A DNA stretch of 64,000 nt. It comes from Dimorphilus gyrociliatus. Lineage: Eukaryota > Animalia > Annelida. The notes under the pieces were generated by a model. It searched no databases. It was not told the origin of the DNA and saw nothing but the letters and a program-made list of their open reading frames with translations. Position 1 is the first letter of the stretch, and each line of letters starts with the position of its first letter. Positions 32,701 through 45,813 of the stretch are shown here, one piece after another. Both the position numbers and the translations under genes were made by a program. The DNA lies in NCBI GenBank assembly GCA_904063045.1, contig CAJFCJ010000019.1:796570-860569 (forward strand), given 5' to 3'.

Positions 32701-35700
32701 AAATAACTAAGGAGTATATTAAAAAAGTGCAATTCCCACTTCCACTCTCCTTCTCTCTCTATCTCTCTCTCTAACTCTCTCTAGCTTTCTCTTTCTCTGT
32801 TCTAAACCAAAAATTAATTCTTTTTTGAAATTTGATTATACTCTCCCTCCTTTATTTTCTAAACCCAAATGGAATAAAAGTAAAATATGAATCGCATTAT
32901 TATAATTGACTTTGAAACTATTTAGTTCGTTCTGGTCTATTGAATTAATGACTATTTTTTTTAAATAACACGAAAGAAAATCTCTATTTGCATTAATTAT
33001 CCCATTAAAACTCATATTTCATTCAGATATCTATTATATTCAATTAGATATTGCTTCCTCTATTGCAGAGGACTATTAAGTTGGGAATTTTGTCTTTATC
33101 TCAGTCCAGTTTTTTTCCTGAATCTGGGTATTAAAAATTTACCATCTTATCCATTTTGTATGTTAAGTCTACCTTACCTTTGTATAATAAGTTGATCAAG
33201 GTAAAATTCTAAACCTCTTTTGATATATATATATATTGTATATCTATGGCTGCAATACATAAATCCGGTAAAAAAAGAGGAGTGATGTTCTCAATAGAAA
33301 AGCATTCTTTCTAACGCTATTAAATATTGATTAAAAGTTGACACAGTACTAATATTTCTCATTTCCTTATTCGAGTACAGGAAAGTATATTTATAAGTAT
33401 ATATATATCTCCTGACATCCTGAACTCTTGTACTATGTGTAACAACCTCATCTCTTAAAAATTTATATATAGTATATATAGCAATATTATACACAAACAC
33501 TTAATTCATGTCAATACTTAAAAACTATTACTTAAGGATGAAATACGGAATCATTTTACTAAATAGTGACAGAGTAAGAATCATATGCACTAAATAGTTA
33601 TACATTGAAATGAAGAAATGCAAAAGGATAAAGGAAGCAACACAAAAAAGTTGACGTATATTAAGTGAAAAGAAAAACTGTATATATATATATAAATAAT
33701 ATTCATATTTGTTAAAAAAATGCTATAGAAATTAGAATATTATTAATATAATAATAATAATAATAATAATGAAATATTAACTAAATAACAGCTAGTAACA
33801 ACAGAATCGTCCACAAGGGATAGCATATGCCTAAATATAAAATAAAATTATAAATAGGACATGAGTGTTATCCCTCCTGAACGCTAGAAGTTTAACCGCC
33901 ACCTTAGGTCCGAACGCGATAATCTTCAATACACATTCGATAGAAAAAAGTATAGTGAAAGCCATATTTAGGTAACCAAGTATGCTGTTATAGCGTAATA
34001 AATCATCCGTCTCCTGTTTATAATACTGAAAACCAAGAAAAGCAGATAGAAACACTCGTGATCCTCTCCAACAATATTTGTCTATTAATATTGTTTTTGT
34101 TGAATATAATAAATAAATAATTGATTGAATTCAAGTTTTTTTTTGCATAACACGCGCAAAAAAATTGTGCAGATGGAGAAGAGAAGAACTCAGTAAATCA
34201 AAAATTCTAAGACTAAGAATAATCCTAATAACAATAAGATCATATATACTAATATATATATATATATATGGACATTTGTACTAAAAAATGCGAAGGAAAT
34301 CCGCCACCTTGCCATTTTACTCGTCTTACCCTAATGCCGAATGCCATCATTTTGAAGATACATTCGATGGTGAAAAGTACCGTAAAGGCTATATTCAAAT
34401 AACGGAGAACTTTGCTGTACGTATCTGATTGTCCATCCACCTGCACTTACATTTTGGGATAATCGGTTTGCATGGTATATGTTTGCATAATAGCATTATG
34501 TTAAGTGACAGGATATATAAATTTATGTCAAATCAATAATATAAGTGTAAAATAACCGTACATACCTTCATCATGAGAATTATGGTATTTAACGCAATCA
34601 TAACCATAATAAAGTACTCAAAAGGTGCCGAGACAACTATTCGCCAAATCCGATATTTAACTGATTGTTTGTTCTTGGGCATATAACGGCAAAGAGGACG
34701 GGCGTTAATGGCGAAATCGATACATTGTTTCTGTAAAACGTCTTATTGATTTTTCTGTCCTTGGTAAATTAAACATGTTGCGTATTACCTGGTTTTTATC
34801 AAGATCTTGATCGACCAGTTCATTTTCACCTTGTTCTTGGAATGTAATGATAATCAAAGCGACGAATATGTTAATAAAGAAGAAAGGAAAGACTATAAAG
34901 TAGACCACGTAGAAAATTGCCATTTCCATTCGATATCCGGGTGACGGACCCCGGTTCTCGTATGTAGAATCCATTGAGTGCTTTAAAACAGCAGGCCAAC
35001 CTTCACCAGTTTGCACCGTGAAAAGAGTCAGCATAGCAGCAAGAACATTGTCGTAATGAAAATCCCATCTATTCCATTTTCTATCATCTACACTCGGTAT
35101 ATTTTTATTCTTGTCATAAACAAAATATTGTCCTTGACATTCTGTCTTGGTATTTTTTGAAGCATCCGTACAATAGAAGAATCTCCCTTTGAAAAGTTGT
35201 ACGGCAATAACAGCAAAGATGAATTGAAATAAAAGGTAGACAATCATTATATTTAAAACATTCTTCAAAGAATTAACTACACAATCGAAAACGGCCTGCA
35301 AGGGGTAGTTAAGTATTAGAATATTTCATTGTTCCGTTACCCAGAAACTTTCTGGCAAACCTTTAGTTTAGGGACCCTATTAATTGTCTTTAAAGGTCGA
35401 AGTACCCTAAGGACTCTCAACGACTTAATGGTATTCAAATTCTTTCCGGCACTTGTGCTATCCCTGTAATAAGCAGAAAATGATACGAATATTAGTTTAA
35501 GTTGAGAATCTTTTTCCCTTCTCAAGTATTATCACTCTCTCGTTCTCATTAGTATTTATGCCTTGCCCAAACCGGAAATGAATAAAAAAAAATAAAAGAA
35601 ACAACGAATCAAAAACGAAAAAGCTTTATACTTGCAAAGTGTCAATAATATATTAATACATTAATTTTGAGAGTTTTATCACTTTTCCTTTCAGAAAAAA

Positions 35701-37871
35701 AACATTTAACACTTACGTAAAGATGAAGGCTACCAAGGCGCAAATTACTACAGTGGCATCCAATATATTCCATAGATCACGGCAATAGGAGCCCGGATGG
35801 AAAATTACGCCCAAATCGACCACCTATAAGAAATACCACCACCAGGTGCAAAGTGTAAGAATCATTGTTTATTCTTTTGTTCTTTTTTTTTGTTCGATAA
35901 TTTTCGCGCGCAAAAAAAAAAAAACCAATGTATCGGTTTTTTTGTCGTGTTATGTTTATTTTTAATTTTTATTTATAATTTAAACAAAAAGAAAAAAAAA
36001 GAAAAGAATTGAAGGTGACATGCTGGGCTTGTGCTAAATATTGGCGGTAGCGAACAAAAGAACGACAAAACTCATGCAAATTGGAGATACATAAAAAAAA
36101 TTAATAACTTACACAAAAGCGTACGCTGTAAGGGCACACACAACGACGGTAGCGTCGAGAACATTCCACAAGTCTCTGAAGTAAGACCCTGGATGAATGA
36201 TCATTCCAAGGTCTATGTTCTGTTCAATTGAGTGATAGGTGATATAGGAGATTAAAATAAAAAAAATTGTAAAATAAAAATGAAGCTTTTCTTTTGTTTG
36301 TTTGTTTGTTCTTTCCTTCTTTTGTTTTTTAAAAATATAACAAATTAAAATATTCAACAGCAAAAAAAAACTAAGGAGGAGGAGGAGGGAGAGTAAAAAA
36401 AATATTTAAAATGAAGAAAGATAGCAAATATAAGGAAATGGAGTAGAAAAAAGATGAATAATTAGAAACGGCGCAAAAGTTCTTTGTACTTCTTTGATTA
36501 AGTATAGAAAAAAAATTTTATTTTTTTTTTTCTACAAACCTTCAAGATCATCTCTACTGTAAAGACTCCAGTAAATACATAATCGAAGTAATTTAATATT
36601 TTATTTCTATAAGACTTCTCATCTACTGGATCTTCTGCTGCAAGTGCAATGGAAGACGCACAAATAACGATCATGATGAATAGATCGAAGTAGCGTAAGT
36701 TAACCACAAAGTGGCAAAAGCGTCGAATACTATATATGTATGAGAAAAAAATTGAAATTAATAGGATTAATTAAACTAAAGGTGGCACTACTCCCCGCCC
36801 ATTGGGAATATCACTATGCATTTTAATTAGCACTTACGGATTAGTTGGCCCGAAGATAAACATGGAGGAATAAGGCAGCATAGGTTTCGGACCAGTAAAC
36901 GTTTGTTCTCCCTCGCCTTCTTTTTCGCTTCCGTCGCTACCATCGTCTTGAGAGAGGGAAAGAAAAAAAATTGGTACCCGGCCGACGACAAGTTAAAAAA
37001 ATCTCTTACAGTTGCAAGAGTAAAAAAAACACACGCAGGAAAAAAAATACTCACCGCTCTCAGCGTCTTCTCTGGCTTCAGTCTCACTTTTTCCAGAGGC
37101 TTTCGCTTTGTCAATGTTACTCTTATTATTTGACGCCTGATCAGTACTGAAAGAGATGCTGTCATTGAACCGACGCTTAGCTTTCGAATCGTGCAAAAAA
37201 AGTAAAGTATTTTTACAAATATAACCTAATACCCCAATAAATTGGTTAATAAAATTAGAGTTTGTAGGCCTACAAACGTGCCTATACTAATTAATTTCTT
37301 CACCATTACGCCACATAATTTCCCTTGAAACAAGCCAATTCAATATAGCGTTGAGCTGAAACGTTTCCGATTAACGCCATTAACGTTTTACTCTTTTTTC
37401 TACTTTCTAATCTACGTGGCTGTAATTTTTTTCCAGACAAACTACGCCTAAAGAGTTCAATAAAGGAGAACAATATAGAACAATCATTATCCTAGCCGCC
37501 TACAGATATACAATGTATACAATATACACTGTAAAAAATATAATACGCTGTATATGTGGATATTATAATAAGCGTAGGAATACGTATAGTTAGATATAAA
37601 ATATATATACCTATTGACATATACATATATATATATAATAAACAATATAGTGTTGCGATCTTTAGATATGACGGTCTATCTATCTGTCTGTCTGTCTGTC
37701 TCTCCGTCTCTCTCCCTCTCTCTCTCTCTCTCTCTGCATATATTTATTTTTATTTATTCATATTTAAGTAAAGTTTGTGTATAAACTACTCATTCTAATA
37801 AGTATATATCTATTTATTAAAGTTATATATATATACAGCAATCCAGCATATAGTGTAGGTATACGAGTGTA

Positions 37872-37903
<32 letters not shown>

Positions 37904-40900
37904 CTAATATATATATGCGAGTGTATGCTGTTCCCAGTGAATTCGATTAGGATTGTTCGAAATCGATATATATGTTATACAGCCGTGCATCTATAAGAAT
38001 TTTTTTTTATAATATACGATATAGAAATTTAACACGCAGCGTTCATCAATTGAAAAAAATTGATAACTCACTAATTAAAGTTCCCAGTCTTAGGGTCTTT
38101 ATTGTTCTGCGGTGACGGTGGACAAATGTTCACCATAGGAGCTCCTCCTGCTCCAATTCTCATATGTGCTGGAGGAAAACTAGTTGGGAATTGCTCCCTC
38201 ATATCCAGTTGCGATTGTTCTTCTTTATTATTCTGATTTAAAAAACCGGAAATTAGTCGGTTAGGAAAGCTTTTGTACAAAGAACAAAAGGATAGATTCA
38301 GCCATTAGATGAAGAGTTTTAAAAAATTGCTAATTGGCTAAAAAAGAAGAGAACTCGTTAAAGCATGCGAACCGCCAGCGTTGAAAAGAGGAAAAAAAGT
38401 AGAAAATAAAGTAATTATTAATCGGATGTGCATTAATCAAAGCGTACTTCGACCTGTGCAACGTGAGAATGACTGTCAAATTGTTGGGCAACTTCGTCTT
38501 TCACCTCCTGCCGTCTCTAAAAAACACGACATAACCACTACTACAACTTTTGTTGGAAGGGGTAGGGAGATAATGATTTTGTTATATTGAATGATTATGA
38601 TTAAGGGCTGATATGCCATGCTAATCTACAATGATTTTAAGCCCATATAAACAAACCTTTTCTTCTTCTTCATCAGCTTCCTCTTCGGCAGCGGTTAATT
38701 CCTGAGCATTTGCCAAGTTATCGACGGCGATAGCCAAGAAAACGTTGAGCAGTGTGTAGTTGCCAAATAATACGAGAACGATGAAATATGAGCAATAGAC
38801 CATTCCTCCACCATGAATTCCTCCCTGAGACTGTATGCCGTTGTACATAACTTCGTTCCAATCTTCTCCAGTTAGTATTTGGAAGACTGTTAACAAGGCT
38901 ATAGGGAACGTATCGAAGTTACTAGAGGGTCTGCCTCCTGGAAAATTCCATTCTCCTCCAAATAGCTGCATCCCGAGTAGAGCGAATATAAGAATAAACA
39001 AGAAGAGAAGGAACAAGAGCGATACGATGGATCGCATGGAATTGAGCAATGATACAACGAGGTTCCTCAATGATGCCCAATACCTAATGCGAATTAGGAG
39101 AAAAAAATAATCGATTATACAAATTCGTTGCACGTTATTGCTAAACACACGCAATATTAATAGGGAAATATACGACGCATTGTAATAAGCGTTGTATAGG
39201 ATGTTTACTTATTCGATCGCTTAAACGATGCGTCGTTTCTTTTTTTATAGAAGAAAAAAATAAAAATAAAAAATTATAGAAGGTTTTTAAGTCACAACAA
39301 CAACCTGGTAACTTTGAATATTCTTAGTAATCTGAGGGAGCGAAGGACACTAATCCCGAAAGAAGTTGAGTTGAACTGGTTGTAGATAACTTCGATGATC
39401 GAACCGAATATTACCTGAAAACCGTGCTAATTTACAGACAACACTAAAGGGAAAATAAACCGTAGATTGTTTTTTATTTCATATTTTTTTTAAAGGGAAA
39501 GAGGCATCAATATGGTAATAGAGATTAGGGATTCTAATACAGTTAAGGGACTGTAAGTAAGGGAAGGTAGGTGCGCAATTCGCTAACGATGACGAAGATC
39601 AATTCGTTCTGTTATTTACAAAAGCTCCCGTCATCTTTAGACGTCCCTCTTGCTCTCTCTCTCTCTCTCTCTCTCTCAGGCTTTCTGTCTTTCTTTTTTT
39701 CTCTCTCTCATTCACTCACTCACCCAGTCACTCACTTACTCAGTCACTCATTCTCTTTCTCTCTTTCCCTCTCCCTCTCTCTCTCTCTAATGGTATTTGC
39801 CTTTTTCTCTTTCAATAGAGAAATTATCATTTATGTGAAATTTTTGAAAACACGGCAAAAAAATAAGTAACAATGTATGTTGTTGGTTTTGTTTACATGC
39901 AGAAAAGGGATAAAATAATGAAAGAAAGAAGACAAAGTTAAGAAGAAGATTGAAAAAAATAGCAATTATAGTAATAATAATAATTCATGCACAACACTTT
40001 GTCTGTGCACGCACCTCGTCACTTTGAATATCCTGAGAAGCCGTAAAGCGCGTAGCACCGACACGCCGAATGACGTGTCCGAGCGGAATTCCGACCAGAT
40101 CACTTCGAATACACTGCCCACGATGACCTAACGCGGTGCATATTTAATAATACGAATGTTTTTTGTTTGTTTGTTTGTTTGTTTTTGCTTAAGGAGCGAT
40201 AGAAAAAGGAGAAGAAGCATTTTAACCGTCACCGTTAGAAAAAGGTGATGAATGGTTGCAAAAAACCCTACATTTTTAGTATTATTGTTAGATATAGGCG
40301 TTGTTAAATAATGCAACATTTACTAGCGCATCGACGGACTATATTTTCACCATGGTAACGGTCCCAATGCGCAAAACGTTTGCCCGAATAGGCCAGATTT
40401 TTTTTCTATTACAACTTCTCTACTGAATATATATATATATATATACTTACCACACAGTCGAAGATATTGAACGAAGACTGAAAGTACATATGAAAACCAA
40501 GGCCGTACATTTTGAATATCACCTCAAATATGAAAAGACTGAGGAACACAAACTCTGCAAAGTCTGCAACGCGATATTTATGAATGAAAATTAGTTGAGA
40601 GTAAATCATTCTTTCCTTACATAGAAATTTTGTTAGCCATTCCGGTTGTCCGTAATGTTCGACTGCTACGCAAAATGTATTGAGAAAGACCAGCACTATA
40701 ACCAACCAATAAAACGTTTGGCACTTAACGATCCGTCGAATCGTAAATCTGTTAATAGTTTCCGATTAATTCGTTATCTAATCAAGGGGAATAAAAAGAA
40801 GAAAAATGTAAGAGCAGATCTTTCGTCATACCTAAACGATTTCTCAGCTCTCCAACATCTAGCGCAGCTTCCCTTATTCTGCTTAGATTTAACCCCGTAG

Positions 40901-43900
40901 CCAGGGCGAGAAAACGGACTACCACCCATGTCAGCAAACAATTCCTCGTCGTAGTCATCGGCTTCTAAGTCATCTGTATCTTTACCCTCTTTAATCCGTT
41001 TCATTTTTCTCGTAGCTGCTCTCCTTCGAGCTGTCAACGGAAAGATCAATTACTCACCCACAACATTAAAAACAGTCAGTATGAACTGGGTGGAATATAA
41101 AGGGGTCATCAGATGACGACGTTAAAAGCGTTAAATTTTCACCACCACGTGACCATGGCGTGCAGTGATTCATAAACGGTATACTGTATACTATATGCAT
41201 GTTTTACAAGTAATTGTGCTTGACCACTATATATTACGGGCGGTTCAAGGAGGACCGTTTAACAATTTGCTATAGTAAAGCCGGCGAGGCTTTTTATCAT
41301 AAAAAGTAGATATCAAGGACCAATCGAGTGAGAATTGTTTAAAAATTCGACTTAAGTGAAAATTGAAATATTAAAAAAGTAGTTTTTATATAAAGAAACA
41401 TAAATATATATTAGTATATTATATAAGCCATGTGTATATTTATATACAGTATATATAGTGTAGATATAGTAAATTGAATGATTCATATTTTCTCTATGAT
41501 TAAAATTCAGTATAATTCTATTCAAATTCAAAAGAAATCGGTTTTACTTTATTCTATATATACTTAGTCATATACAGCATACTTAATTTGTATGCATATA
41601 TAGATATCTGTATATAAATATAAACTGCATATGCGTTTCTGTATATATTAATATTATCAGAATCGATTTGTCCTCGTATAACTTATCTTCCAGACTTTAT
41701 TCCTTTTACATGACGTACTCTACATTCTATTCGGAGAAATCTACAATACTAGCCTTTACCTCTCTTTAAGCCACCAAATAAACCTTTTTCTATAATTGCG
41801 AATGAAAAGAATAGATTTAGAACGATTGTGCACACAACAATAACTATTAACATCATGTACAAAGCAAATTTTTTAATTGTTGTTATTATATTATTAGAAG
41901 ATCTTTATTCATTTTAGAAGCCTCTTTGTGAGAGGTTGAAAGAAAGAGTTAATGGGAACGATAGTGGGAAGGGAAAGCATTGAACCAATATAGTTAAGAA
42001 GAATTTAAATAGTAAGGGCGAGGAGAGGGAAGCAGAAGCGTAAGAAAACGATAATGATGATGAAGAAGAAGAAAAAGAAGAGGCTTAATTATTGGGAGAA
42101 AACGATTAATGATGGAAATATAAAGGCAGCGAAACAGAAAAAAAAAAGAGGGAAAGAAGGAGAAGAATCAGCAATAGTAGCAGCAAAAACGGCAGCAGTA
42201 ATAGCAGACGATGAGAAAGATTTTAAAAAGAATGAAGTAAAAAAAGAGAAAAAAAAGAAAGAAAGAAAAAAAAGATGTATGAGAATACGACTTGTATGAT
42301 AAAAAAAAAGATAGAAATAAAATATTCGCTTATTTGAAATACCTTCCATTATTTTCGCCTTATCCTCCTCGCTTGTCCGTTCTTCATTCAATATGACTTC
42401 CTCTGAGAATCGAAATGTCAAATGAGAAGGAGATAATTAGCCGAAGCTTTTTTCTATAATGAAACGCACCTGCTTTGCAGATCCATTCTAAATAACCATT
42501 TAGTTCTCGTTCAGTTTGCTGTTGCTTGCGTAATTTCAGAAAAGCTCGACGATTTTCGACACGCTCTCTTTCCTTAGCGAATTCCCTGTACGGAATTGTA
42601 TTGATTTTTTTAGTTACGCGTCGCGAATATATCGTGTAGCGCATTAACTATGGAGAAACCGCCTTTTTTTTTTCCTCTTTCTAAAAAGATGAAAAATAAA
42701 TGGAATAGGAATTGCCATCTTGTAGTTCGGAAATGTAAGTTAAGTGTATAAGGAGATCTTTTGTTATTCGCTGGAGGTTGCGGCATTGTATTGGCGCAGT
42801 GCAGTTGGCACAAACAAATCAATGAATGCGGCAGCTGAGTGTAGTTTTGCAGTTGGCCTATTTCGCAAGAGCGACACTCACCCACTTAAAACACCGAGAA
42901 CGAGATTAAGCATGAAGAATGATCCAAGAATAATCAGGGGGAAAAAGTAAATCCAAGTAAAGTTCGGTCCTACGGCATCATTCGTATAATAGAGAACGGA
43001 AGTCCAACCCTCCATAGTAATGCACTGAAAAACGGTCAACATAGCGAATCCTATATTATCGAATGACGTTATTCCGTAATTTGGCCCTTCCCAATAAGAT
43101 CGACATCTCGATCCTTCCGGACAAACAAAACCAGTTACAGACTTCTCTTTGCTGCTCGTCGATTGCATACAAGGTGTAACATTCTCTTCGCCCGCCAAAT
43201 CAAATTCATCTTCCATATGAGTGTTCGATGTATTTTCATATCTGCAGGCCGTGTGAAAAGCACCGCTGTAAAACTCTAGGCCTATGATAGCGAAGATGAC
43301 GATGGCGAAGAGCACCAAGAGGGCGATTTGAGCCAGCGGCGCCATAGCTCGGATGATCGATTTGAGCACAACTTGAAGACCTGTTTAAAGATGCGTATAA
43401 TTAAAGTGGAGAAAAATATGGCCCATATAAAGAGAATGAAGAACTTTAAACAAAGAAAGCACACAAGGTTCATTTGATAGGAAAACAGAAATTTTCCATC
43501 ACCCGATAACAACAGCGACATGCACGAAAAGTTATTAAATTCCGCTCGTATTTCTATTTCTTAGATAGATGAATTTATTGCATGCTTTAAACCACAAAAT
43601 GCTGTCATTTCTAATCATTTTTTTTTCTCTCCCTTCCGTCTTTCATTCTCGTGTTGTTTTTATGTTTTAAAATCCTTAATAAAAGTATAAAGACAAAACT
43701 AGTATTGTATCAATAACCCGCTAGATATATTTATACACTTGATAACCATTACAAAAGAAGATTGTTACATAAAAAAAAATACGGAATCTTTAAATGAAAC
43801 AAAAAAAAAGAAGAAAAAGAATGAAAAGAGACAAGAGAATTCGAAAGAAATAGAATTAATGCATATAATACAATTTTGTTTTTTTTTTTATTTGTTTGTA

Positions 43901-45813
43901 CAAGATCATTTAGAGAAGGAGGGAGAGAGATTGTAAAGATATTTCTTTTTTATTCATTTGTTTTTATTTTTTTAAAAAAAAAATAAAAAAAGACTTTCAC
44001 CCCTTCATGCAATTCCCTTTTGATTTATAAAGGTACCAACTGGGTATCCCAGACACCAGCTTGAGGGGTCTGAGGACTCGAATAGCTCGGAGTATTCTTA
44101 AATTAAATTTTTTACTATCGCTATCCAAAACAATAGTGACTAACCTAAAAGGGAAAATGAAAGGGGTAATGGTTGTGGAAGGTTAAAATACTAAACATAA
44201 AAGGGTGTATAATAGATACACGCGTATGAATAAGAATACAAAGTTATAAAAATAATAATAATAATCATCATCATTATAAAAAAATATCCGTGAAGACGTA
44301 GGTTGGAACTAGGGCTAAAGGTGTGGGTGGTGATGGGGGAGGGAAAAGGGGTTATAAAAACACAAGTGGAAAAAAAAACTGTATAGGACGACGTCGACCA
44401 CTGGATTGCTTACTTTCGAAGCCTGTCACCAGTTTGAGAGGCCTTAATACTCTGATAGCCCGCAGAGCAGCCTGATCAAACCTCGGAATGAAGAGGGAAC
44501 ACAGCCTGAAAACGTAGGAAGAATTTATACGTTATAGAATCGTTAGCACTTTTTTTTTCATCGTATCGATCATTGGTCGTCGGCTGACAGTTTGCTCTTT
44601 TCTCGATAAGGAGGTAAAAGTTTACTTGACATATTTTATTATTAACAATAATAGTAATAATAATAAGACCGCTATCATAATTATTATTCTTCCTATAATA
44701 AAAGGCTAGAGCATGCGAAAAAGAATTTTAACTCACCCGGTTACTACTACTATAAAATCCATTATATTCCAAACGTTCCTAAGATAAGCTCCTTTATGCA
44801 ATACGAATCCTAAAGCAACTATCTTCAGTAAAGCTTCCACGCAAAAAATTCCTAGAAAGTACACTTCAGTTTCCTCCTGCAGAAATTAGAAGGTACGTAA
44901 ATAGAGGGAGGAGAAAGAGAAACGTGTCAAAGAGCGTACCAATTGTATGGCAAGAACGGTCTTGTCCCCTTTCGGCAAATGTTCTTCGAGAGCCAAAACG
45001 ATACAATTGGCGATGATTGTAAGTAGCACCATATATTCGAAAGGCTTACACCGAAGTTAAGGTTAATTACAATAGAAAAATCGTAGTAAAATACTACATT
45101 GAGAGTATATATACAGTAAATTATGTATACATTTTATGAATAGTCTATATAGTCCAACTATAAAAAATGAAAATTATGTCTAGAAACGTAAGCGTTCGTA
45201 AGCGTCTAAATGTTCGTCTACAAACGGCCATGCATCTACGAATGTTTGTACACAAAATCACCAGACACACAATATTATAAATGAAATATTAGAATGAAAA
45301 CACGCTTTGTGCATCAAACGCATGTCATCAAATATATATAAACGTATATTGTAGGGGTCTAGGAGCAAAAAGAGAAAAAAACAGGATAGATAAGAATAAA
45401 TAGGCCAATAGAATGGGCGATGGTATGAATATTTTAAAAAGAAGGCTGAAACTGCTAGCGTTCGATCGATATCGGACGGCGAGCGCTCTGCAGAACTTAA
45501 GCTTCTTTTTATTTTGAAAAACGTTTAACGGATAACCGCGGAGAGTAATTAGAACGTTATGCGAGAGGCAAGCCAATCGATATACACTGCAACAGGTGCG
45601 CGTTTGAAAATGACACGTTCTGGAATGCATGAATTACCCAAAACTATATCCACATATATGTGCACATGCCGTATCTATACATGAATGTTCTGGCTATAAA
45701 TATATACAAAGCTTGTATAAATTGAATATATATATATATATATATACACTTAGTACATAACTGTATATACATATTAACCTTTCCGCTCCTCATATACACT
45801 AAACGTAAGTAGA

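Follow-up and report, generated by a model that had tools for sequence, protein, structure and literature searches.

The window analysed here, a stretch of 64,000 nucleotides from contig CAJFCJ010000019.1 of the annelid Dimorphilus gyrociliatus, carries on its minus strand a calcium channel alpha-1 gene that runs from about 46.2 kb down to 26.8 kb and features tandem pairs of homologous coding exons in all four of its voltage-sensing domains. The subfamily of the channel is best read from the large C-terminal exon, for which human Cav2.3, Cav2.2 and Cav2.1 give 472-450 bits, Cav1 at most 414 bits and Cav3 at most 122 bits. This exon contains the Pfam domains Ion_trans, GPHH (96 bits) and Ca_chan_IQ (104 bits); with the domain I pore exon, the Cav subfamilies could not be told apart. 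Ion_trans matches in the tested exons came from domains I, III and IV. Domain II was read from the translations, as were the EEEE filter (TMEGW, TGEDW, TGEGW and TGENW, one per pore loop) and the AID motif [14 protein letters not shown] in the I-II loop (42471-42584). All of the best full-length homologues carry the name 'type A subunit alpha-1' or cacophony, and amino-acid identity, 64-88% by exon, is about equal to molluscs, the annelid Owenia, nemerteans and a brachiopod. Judged from bit scores, motifs and homologue names, this is the Cav2-type (cacophony or 'type A') alpha-1 gene of a lophotrochozoan, in agreement with the preliminary description of this DNA, which had been made from the letters alone.

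The same description had proposed a homologous exon pair with intact splice sites and matching phases in each voltage-sensing domain, and the eight exons stand up to closer analysis. All of them, like the constitutive exons named below, lie on the minus strand. Exon I-a (44414-44505, 92 nt, AG/GTAAGC sites) encodes an alternative IS3-S4 loop and IS4 segment reading ..[24 protein letters not shown], with a short loop, no outermost arginine and the tail GFES; its partner I-b (44041-44144, 104 nt) encodes the canonical IS4 with the tail GIPS and ends in the weak donor GTTGGT. Pair II covers the IIS3-S4 loop and S4: II-a (40015-40127, 113 nt) has the loop [14 protein letters not shown], and the alternative II-b (39305-39414, 110 nt, donor GTTGTT) has the loop [13 protein letters not shown], which has no charge, is shorter by one residue and contains an N-S-T sequon. 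The IIIS2-S3 loop and S3 are encoded by pair III, with the alternative III-a (36113-36219, 107 nt, donor GTAAGT), whose acceptor is weak and has a poor pyrimidine tract, and III-b (35717-35823, 107 nt), which is of the ancestral type. Pair IV provides the IVS1-S2 loop and S2, either as IV-a (34330-34440, 111 nt), with the tail AFGIR, or as the alternative IV-b (33903-34025, 123 nt), which starts with Y and has the tail AFGPK and the donor GTGGCG.

Each of the eight exons is bounded by AG and GT, phases are equal between partners, and all four pairs display the homology, similar length, equal phase and own splice sites that characterize clusters of mutually exclusive exons. Partners share 50-73% of their amino acids and 54-62% of their nucleotides; the duplications are therefore old. 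To find duplicates, minus-strand stop-free stretches of at least 18 amino acids between 26 and 47 kb were compared all against all by BLASTP, which returned four short-range matches, 361-713 nt apart and with E values from 1e-5 to 8e-16, one for each of the four pairs. All remaining matches connect different domains more than 4 kb apart, and no tandem duplicates of pore, AID or EF-hand exons turned up in this search. Both the restriction of the pairs to the voltage sensors and the weaker donor on the downstream member in three of the four pairs (I-b, II-b and IV-b) had been noted in the preliminary description and were confirmed.

Exon lengths differ in a telling way between the pairs, being 2 mod 3 in pairs I to III and 0 mod 3 in pair IV. 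The constitutive IS2-S3 exon upstream of pair I (44737-44876) ends in ..ACCGG, and either I-a or I-b supplies, with its first G, the missing letter of the split codon. According to the frame computation, taking both exons or neither in pairs I to III leads to stop codons within a few dozen codons. Because both of these choices shift the frame, pairs I to III allow only one exon per productive mRNA. We propose that the pre-mRNA would take one copy per pair and that, at pairs I to III, wrong choices would be removed afterwards via the frameshift into early stops; at pair IV, exclusivity would have to come from splicing control alone. We infer that exclusivity is strict.

Are the exons maintained? 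A related worm, represented by the unspliced contigs L001, L002 and L004 (runs X2 and X3), covers the gene from IS5 past IV-b. Between the window and this relative, exons are 80-98% identical, and intron intervals 54-96%, mostly 60-79%. All six exons of pairs II to IV keep their frame and both splice sites in the relative, including the unusual donors GTTGTT of II-b and GTGGCG of IV-b. Synonymous and non-synonymous counts were compared with the expectation for neutral change, giving P = 0.0013 for II-b (five synonymous changes, no non-synonymous one), P = 2.4e-4 for III-a (six and none, with AG and GTAAGT kept), P = 0.0057 for III-b (six and two) and P = 5e-8 for IV-b (19 and six, with a single change, I to V, in the S2 helix). 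In II-a (two and none; P = 0.078; 98% identical) and IV-a (three and two; P = 0.088; 95.5% identical, splice sites identical), there are too few changes for the test. Taken as a set, these patterns of change show that pairs II to IV, with all six of their exons, are under purifying selection in the relative.

IV-b has diverged most at the DNA level, with 80% identity to L004 versus 92-98% for the other exons, its changes being almost all silent or located in the loop. The contigs L001 to L007 are Logan contigs of the runs SRR23372216 to SRR23372232, which are labelled coral metagenome RNA, and they represent a worm whose exons differ from the window by about 9%. Since these worm contigs are long and unspliced, the coral runs contain genomic DNA or pre-mRNA of a small coral-associated annelid.

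RNA contigs were aligned on 34770-40765 only, an interval that comprises pairs II and III and the exons on either side. They stem from run X1, identical to the window, and from run X6, about 97% identical and thus another strain or a close relative, whose contigs are spliced across eight exons. The constitutive exon that extends from the end of IIS4 to IIS6 (38657-39083; X6 joints and contig record 12) accepts II-a or II-b: in X6, position 39083 is joined to 39305 of II-b at a contig depth of 77 and, in a separate contig that skips II-b, to 40015 of II-a at a depth of 129, both with GT..AG ends. A long X6 contig ends exactly at the fork between II-a and II-b, as is typical of de Bruijn assembly at an alternative splice. 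III-b is joined to the constitutive IIIS1-S2 exon upstream of pair III (36540-36729) and to 35463 in spliced contigs (X6 record 12, X1 record 2). Three predicted exon borders are confirmed by the joints 39083/39305, 39083/40015 and 35823/36540, the last of which is found in both X1 and X6. The constitutive IVS1 exon upstream of pair IV (34566-34730) was placed by alignment with the relative and by the loose end of X6 record 12, which reads [10 protein letters not shown]. Separately, a 57-nt in-frame intron in IIS1-S2 (40564-40620) is removed in X6 transcripts; its retention would add 19 residues without a stop.

On balance, we consider it probable that D. gyrociliatus possesses a Cav2 gene with an old, diverged coding exon pair in each of the four voltage sensors, kept by selection and used one copy per pair. 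Several observations weigh against this reading. RNA support is confined to II-a, II-b and III-b, pairs I and IV lying outside the RNA-aligned interval, and no spliced contig of X1 or X6 includes III-a. The joints listed for II-b lead downstream only, with none to the upstream exon, which leaves the frame as the argument for exclusivity in pair II. X6 and the window are about 3% apart, and assembled contigs lose rare variants and give no isoform ratios. In addition, L001 and L003 end about 600 nt before pair I, placing this pair outside the relative's contigs, and an exact look-up of the IS2-S3 reading frame yielded none that reaches it. Pair IV would remain in frame whether both of its exons or none were taken. 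The use of III-a, of both exons of pair I and of both exons of pair IV in D. gyrociliatus is presumed. The exact junctions of I-a with the IS5 exon and of III-a with the IIIS4 exon were sought in JGI metagenome contigs, where neither was found.

The skipping of III-a and the poor pyrimidine tract of its acceptor are what one would expect if one or more members of the pairs, III-a above all, were dead duplicates that never enter a productive mRNA. A peptide search for III-a also returned no candidate, a blank of little weight given that the collection has hardly any short fragments of D. gyrociliatus. Nevertheless, we regard dead duplicates as improbable: the changes between window and relative in III-a are all synonymous, with its splice sites and a downstream UGCAUG kept, II-b and IV-b show a like pattern, and in all eight exons the frame is open and the key charged residues are preserved despite the low nucleotide identity between partners. 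The all-synonymous changes in the relative are the best argument that III-a is probably a translated exon. A more radical explanation of the pairs would be an assembly error, with haplotypes collapsed or duplicated or a tandem repeat put together wrongly; we found no point in its support. Partners this dissimilar as DNA, the occurrence of both members of pairs II, III and IV in independent contigs of the relative from other sequencing runs, and the presence of both II-a and II-b in RNA leave an assembly artefact with practically no probability.

It is also conceivable that all exons are used without being strictly exclusive, pair IV acting as two cassettes and the both-or-neither forms of the other pairs serving to lower the amount of mRNA by nonsense-mediated decay. 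The open frame of pair IV speaks for such a use, as do some Cav2 models of bee, Nasonia and spider (P0235, P0236, P0263, P0240), which carry both IVS2 exons in tandem. However, two or zero S2 helices would result in the wrong membrane topology, mollusc isoform sets have one IVS2 exon or the other, and the authors of the Aplysia study call the IVS2 exons mutually exclusive (PMC5818475); the tandem arrangement in the arthropod models looks like an annotation error at an exclusive pair. For pairs I to III, the frame bars productive double or null forms. Non-exclusive use thus appears unlikely to us, and we continue with the reading of one exon per pair.

How could the choice between partners be made? 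Steric exclusion was considered and is unlikely given the introns between partners, which measure 269-600 nt. A search for competing RNA stems of the docking/selector kind around each pair gave only A/T-rich low-complexity matches. On the minus strand, the motif UGCAUG is located downstream of I-b (31 nt, at 44010), II-a (25 nt, at 39990) and III-a (36 nt, at 36077), against a GCAUG background of about 0.5 per kb on the same strand. The motifs of II-a and III-a are conserved in the relative, as are the weak donors where they can be checked, namely in II-b and IV-b. Such positions would fit control by an Rbfox-type factor, and we infer a regulation via conserved UGCAUG motifs together with weak donors.

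Some introns of the gene are themselves well conserved in the relative. Those at 38233-38656 and 39084-39304 are about 89% conserved, and the latter, between II-b and the next exon, contains an 18-nt local hairpin (39166-39183 with 39225-39242); both introns could be splicing control elements. Farther upstream in the gene, the intron between the IS6 and AID exons (42585-42880) is 94% identical to the relative, versus 88-97% for its flanking exons and 60-79% for most introns; searches of it for an Rfam match, a fold signal or an inverted repeat with neighbouring exons were all negative.

At the protein level, the choice in pair I would change the outermost IS4 charge and the length of the IS3-S4 loop: read from the sequence, I-a loses the outermost gating charge and shortens the loop. 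Pair II would change charge, length and glycosylation sequon of the IIS3-S4 loop. In pair III, the IIIS3 helix would be exchanged, III-a having 10 of 35 residues changed in and before S3 with the S3 aspartate kept. In pair IV, the choice would affect the IVS1-S2 loop, whose length is not the same in IV-a and IV-b, and the S2 segment, which differs between them but has the S2 glutamate and lysine in both. In this way, one gene could make channels with differing voltage-sensor properties, and by analogy with the IS4 pair of the fly the choice of exon may affect gating.

The distribution of the exon versions in other phyla allows the ages of the pairs to be compared. IS4 is of the GIPS type in 247 of 256 homologues. 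The I-a pattern of a short IS3-S4 loop, a lost outermost arginine and the tail G-[FI]-[EQ]-S is common to Antedon, Schistosoma, Pomacea, Pinctada and Haliotis: it is an alternative and minor isoform in the crinoid Antedon (one of 15 isoforms), Pomacea and Haliotis, and it is the form used in the Schistosoma and Pinctada models. As the type is present in crinoid, flatworm and mollusc sequences, I-a is an ancient bilaterian alternative exon. Similarly, an either/or IVS2 exon occurs at the identical place in RefSeq isoforms of 10 molluscs, and an IVS2 mutually exclusive pair has been published for Cav2 of Aplysia, Crassostrea and Octopus (PMC5818475). The nearest homologue of IV-a is found in Tubulanus (68%) and those of IV-b in Lineus and Lingula (62%), and the two exons are 46% identical to each other. 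An IVS2 exon tree had too few columns for resolution, and orthology of IV-a and IV-b with particular IVS2 types of other phyla is only suggested. Pairs I and IV are thus old, and each is already known at least from annotation and one paper.

Pairs II and III differ in this respect. Their counterparts in other phyla were sought via annotated isoforms only, the Cav2 genes of Littorina, Owenia, Lingula and Tubulanus exceeding 100 kb, and no variation was seen at those places in the isoform sets of 10 molluscs and a nemertean, nor in 15 crinoid isoforms. An older origin of II-b was considered on account of the motif EVIY.Q, which it has in common with the single models of Lingula and Tubulanus, and was dropped, the overall identity to II-b being no better than to II-a. 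III-b is identical to Owenia in 32 of 35 residues, and from this similarity III-b is the ancestral type and III-a the diverged copy. In the literature searched, there was no report of pair II or III, or of pairs in all four sensors of one Cav2. The suggestion that such a channel would be new therefore holds in part: the IVS2 pair is published (PMC5818475), as is an IS4 pair for Drosophila, and pairs II and III and the full four-sensor set in one Cav2, which are without counterpart in the eleven isoform sets and the literature searched, appear undescribed.

The isoform sets of other phyla also contain either/or segments outside the voltage sensors. In Antedon Cav2 (P0024, P0154-P0167), such a segment is located in the domain IV pore loop region, and in Lineus Cav2 (P0210, P0358-P0371) in the domain I turret (IS5-P); neither occurs in D. 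gyrociliatus.

The preliminary description had further suggested that exon duplication takes the place of gene duplication where the genome is compact. Very short introns have been described for the D. gyrociliatus genome (PMC7854359). For pairs I and IV, the idea fails because both predate the D. gyrociliatus lineage. The 16 or 128 isoform combinations that had been put forward are arithmetic and were not observed. A more ambitious scenario would see pairs II and III as innovations of the D. gyrociliatus lineage added to two ancestral pairs, resulting in a 16-state sensor code with neuronal choice coordinated by the shared UGCAUG motifs and weak donors; we offer it as a tentative idea that is doubtful for now. 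If true, the 16-state code would provide natural single-sensor swaps with which the role of each sensor in Cav2 gating could be addressed.

What would make the gene valuable for channel physiology is its set of natural variants. The four voltage sensors of Cav channels are non-equivalent, and the contribution of each one to opening is debated. Here, one gene supplies a natural alternative version of one segment per sensor, and selection maintains at least six of the eight versions. Provided that the isoforms are expressed and that their gating differs, they would represent evolution-tested swaps for voltage-clamp experiments. Moreover, the IS4 and IVS2 pairs have a much greater age and a much wider distribution than one would gather from the fly and Aplysia papers: the a-type IS4 occurs in a crinoid, flatworms, molluscs and D. 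gyrociliatus, and the IVS2 pair in molluscs, arthropods and D. gyrociliatus.

Finally, we would like to compare the D. gyrociliatus gene with mutually exclusive exons of other calcium channels. In vertebrate Cav2, the pair 37a/37b is located in the C-terminal EF-hand region (PMC5818475) and thus outside the voltage sensor, and D. gyrociliatus Cav2 has no such duplicate. Vertebrate Cav1.2 has the mutually exclusive exons 8/8a, 21/22 and 31/32 (PMC3060452, PMC5059693). Like the pairs found here, these are tandem duplicates that swap single transmembrane segments of a four-domain channel. Exons 8/8a encode IS6, exons 21/22 IIIS2 and exons 31/32 IVS3. The Cav1.2 exons differ from those of D. gyrociliatus in that they belong to the Cav1 subfamily, affect other segments, among them the pore-lining IS6 in the case of one pair, and are not present in all four sensors. 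Closer to pair IV is the mollusc IVS2 pair, which agrees with it in place (after ..LMMK and before NYF[RH]D), in lengths that are multiples of three and in one version starting with Y. However, the S1-S2 loop of the major mollusc version is long and specific to molluscs, and this version groups in a clade of its own; IV-a has its closest matches among nemertean and scorpion sequences. IVS2 is the only exclusive pair reported for Aplysia Cav2 (PMC5818475). A well-studied pair comparable to pair I is found in Drosophila cacophony, where the mutually exclusive exons IS4A and IS4B differ in S4 charge and set activation voltage and active-zone localisation (PMC11828482, PMC12370356). The two pairs are alike in gene family, in the IS4 segment and in their either/or logic. 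Yet the fly and insect IS4 versions recovered all end in GIPS or GVPS, whereas I-a has GFES and lacks the outermost arginine, as in crinoid, flatworms and gastropods. While fly cacophony features only the IS4 and I-II loop pairs, with none in domains II to IV, the Cav2 gene of D. gyrociliatus carries an exon pair in all four voltage sensors.

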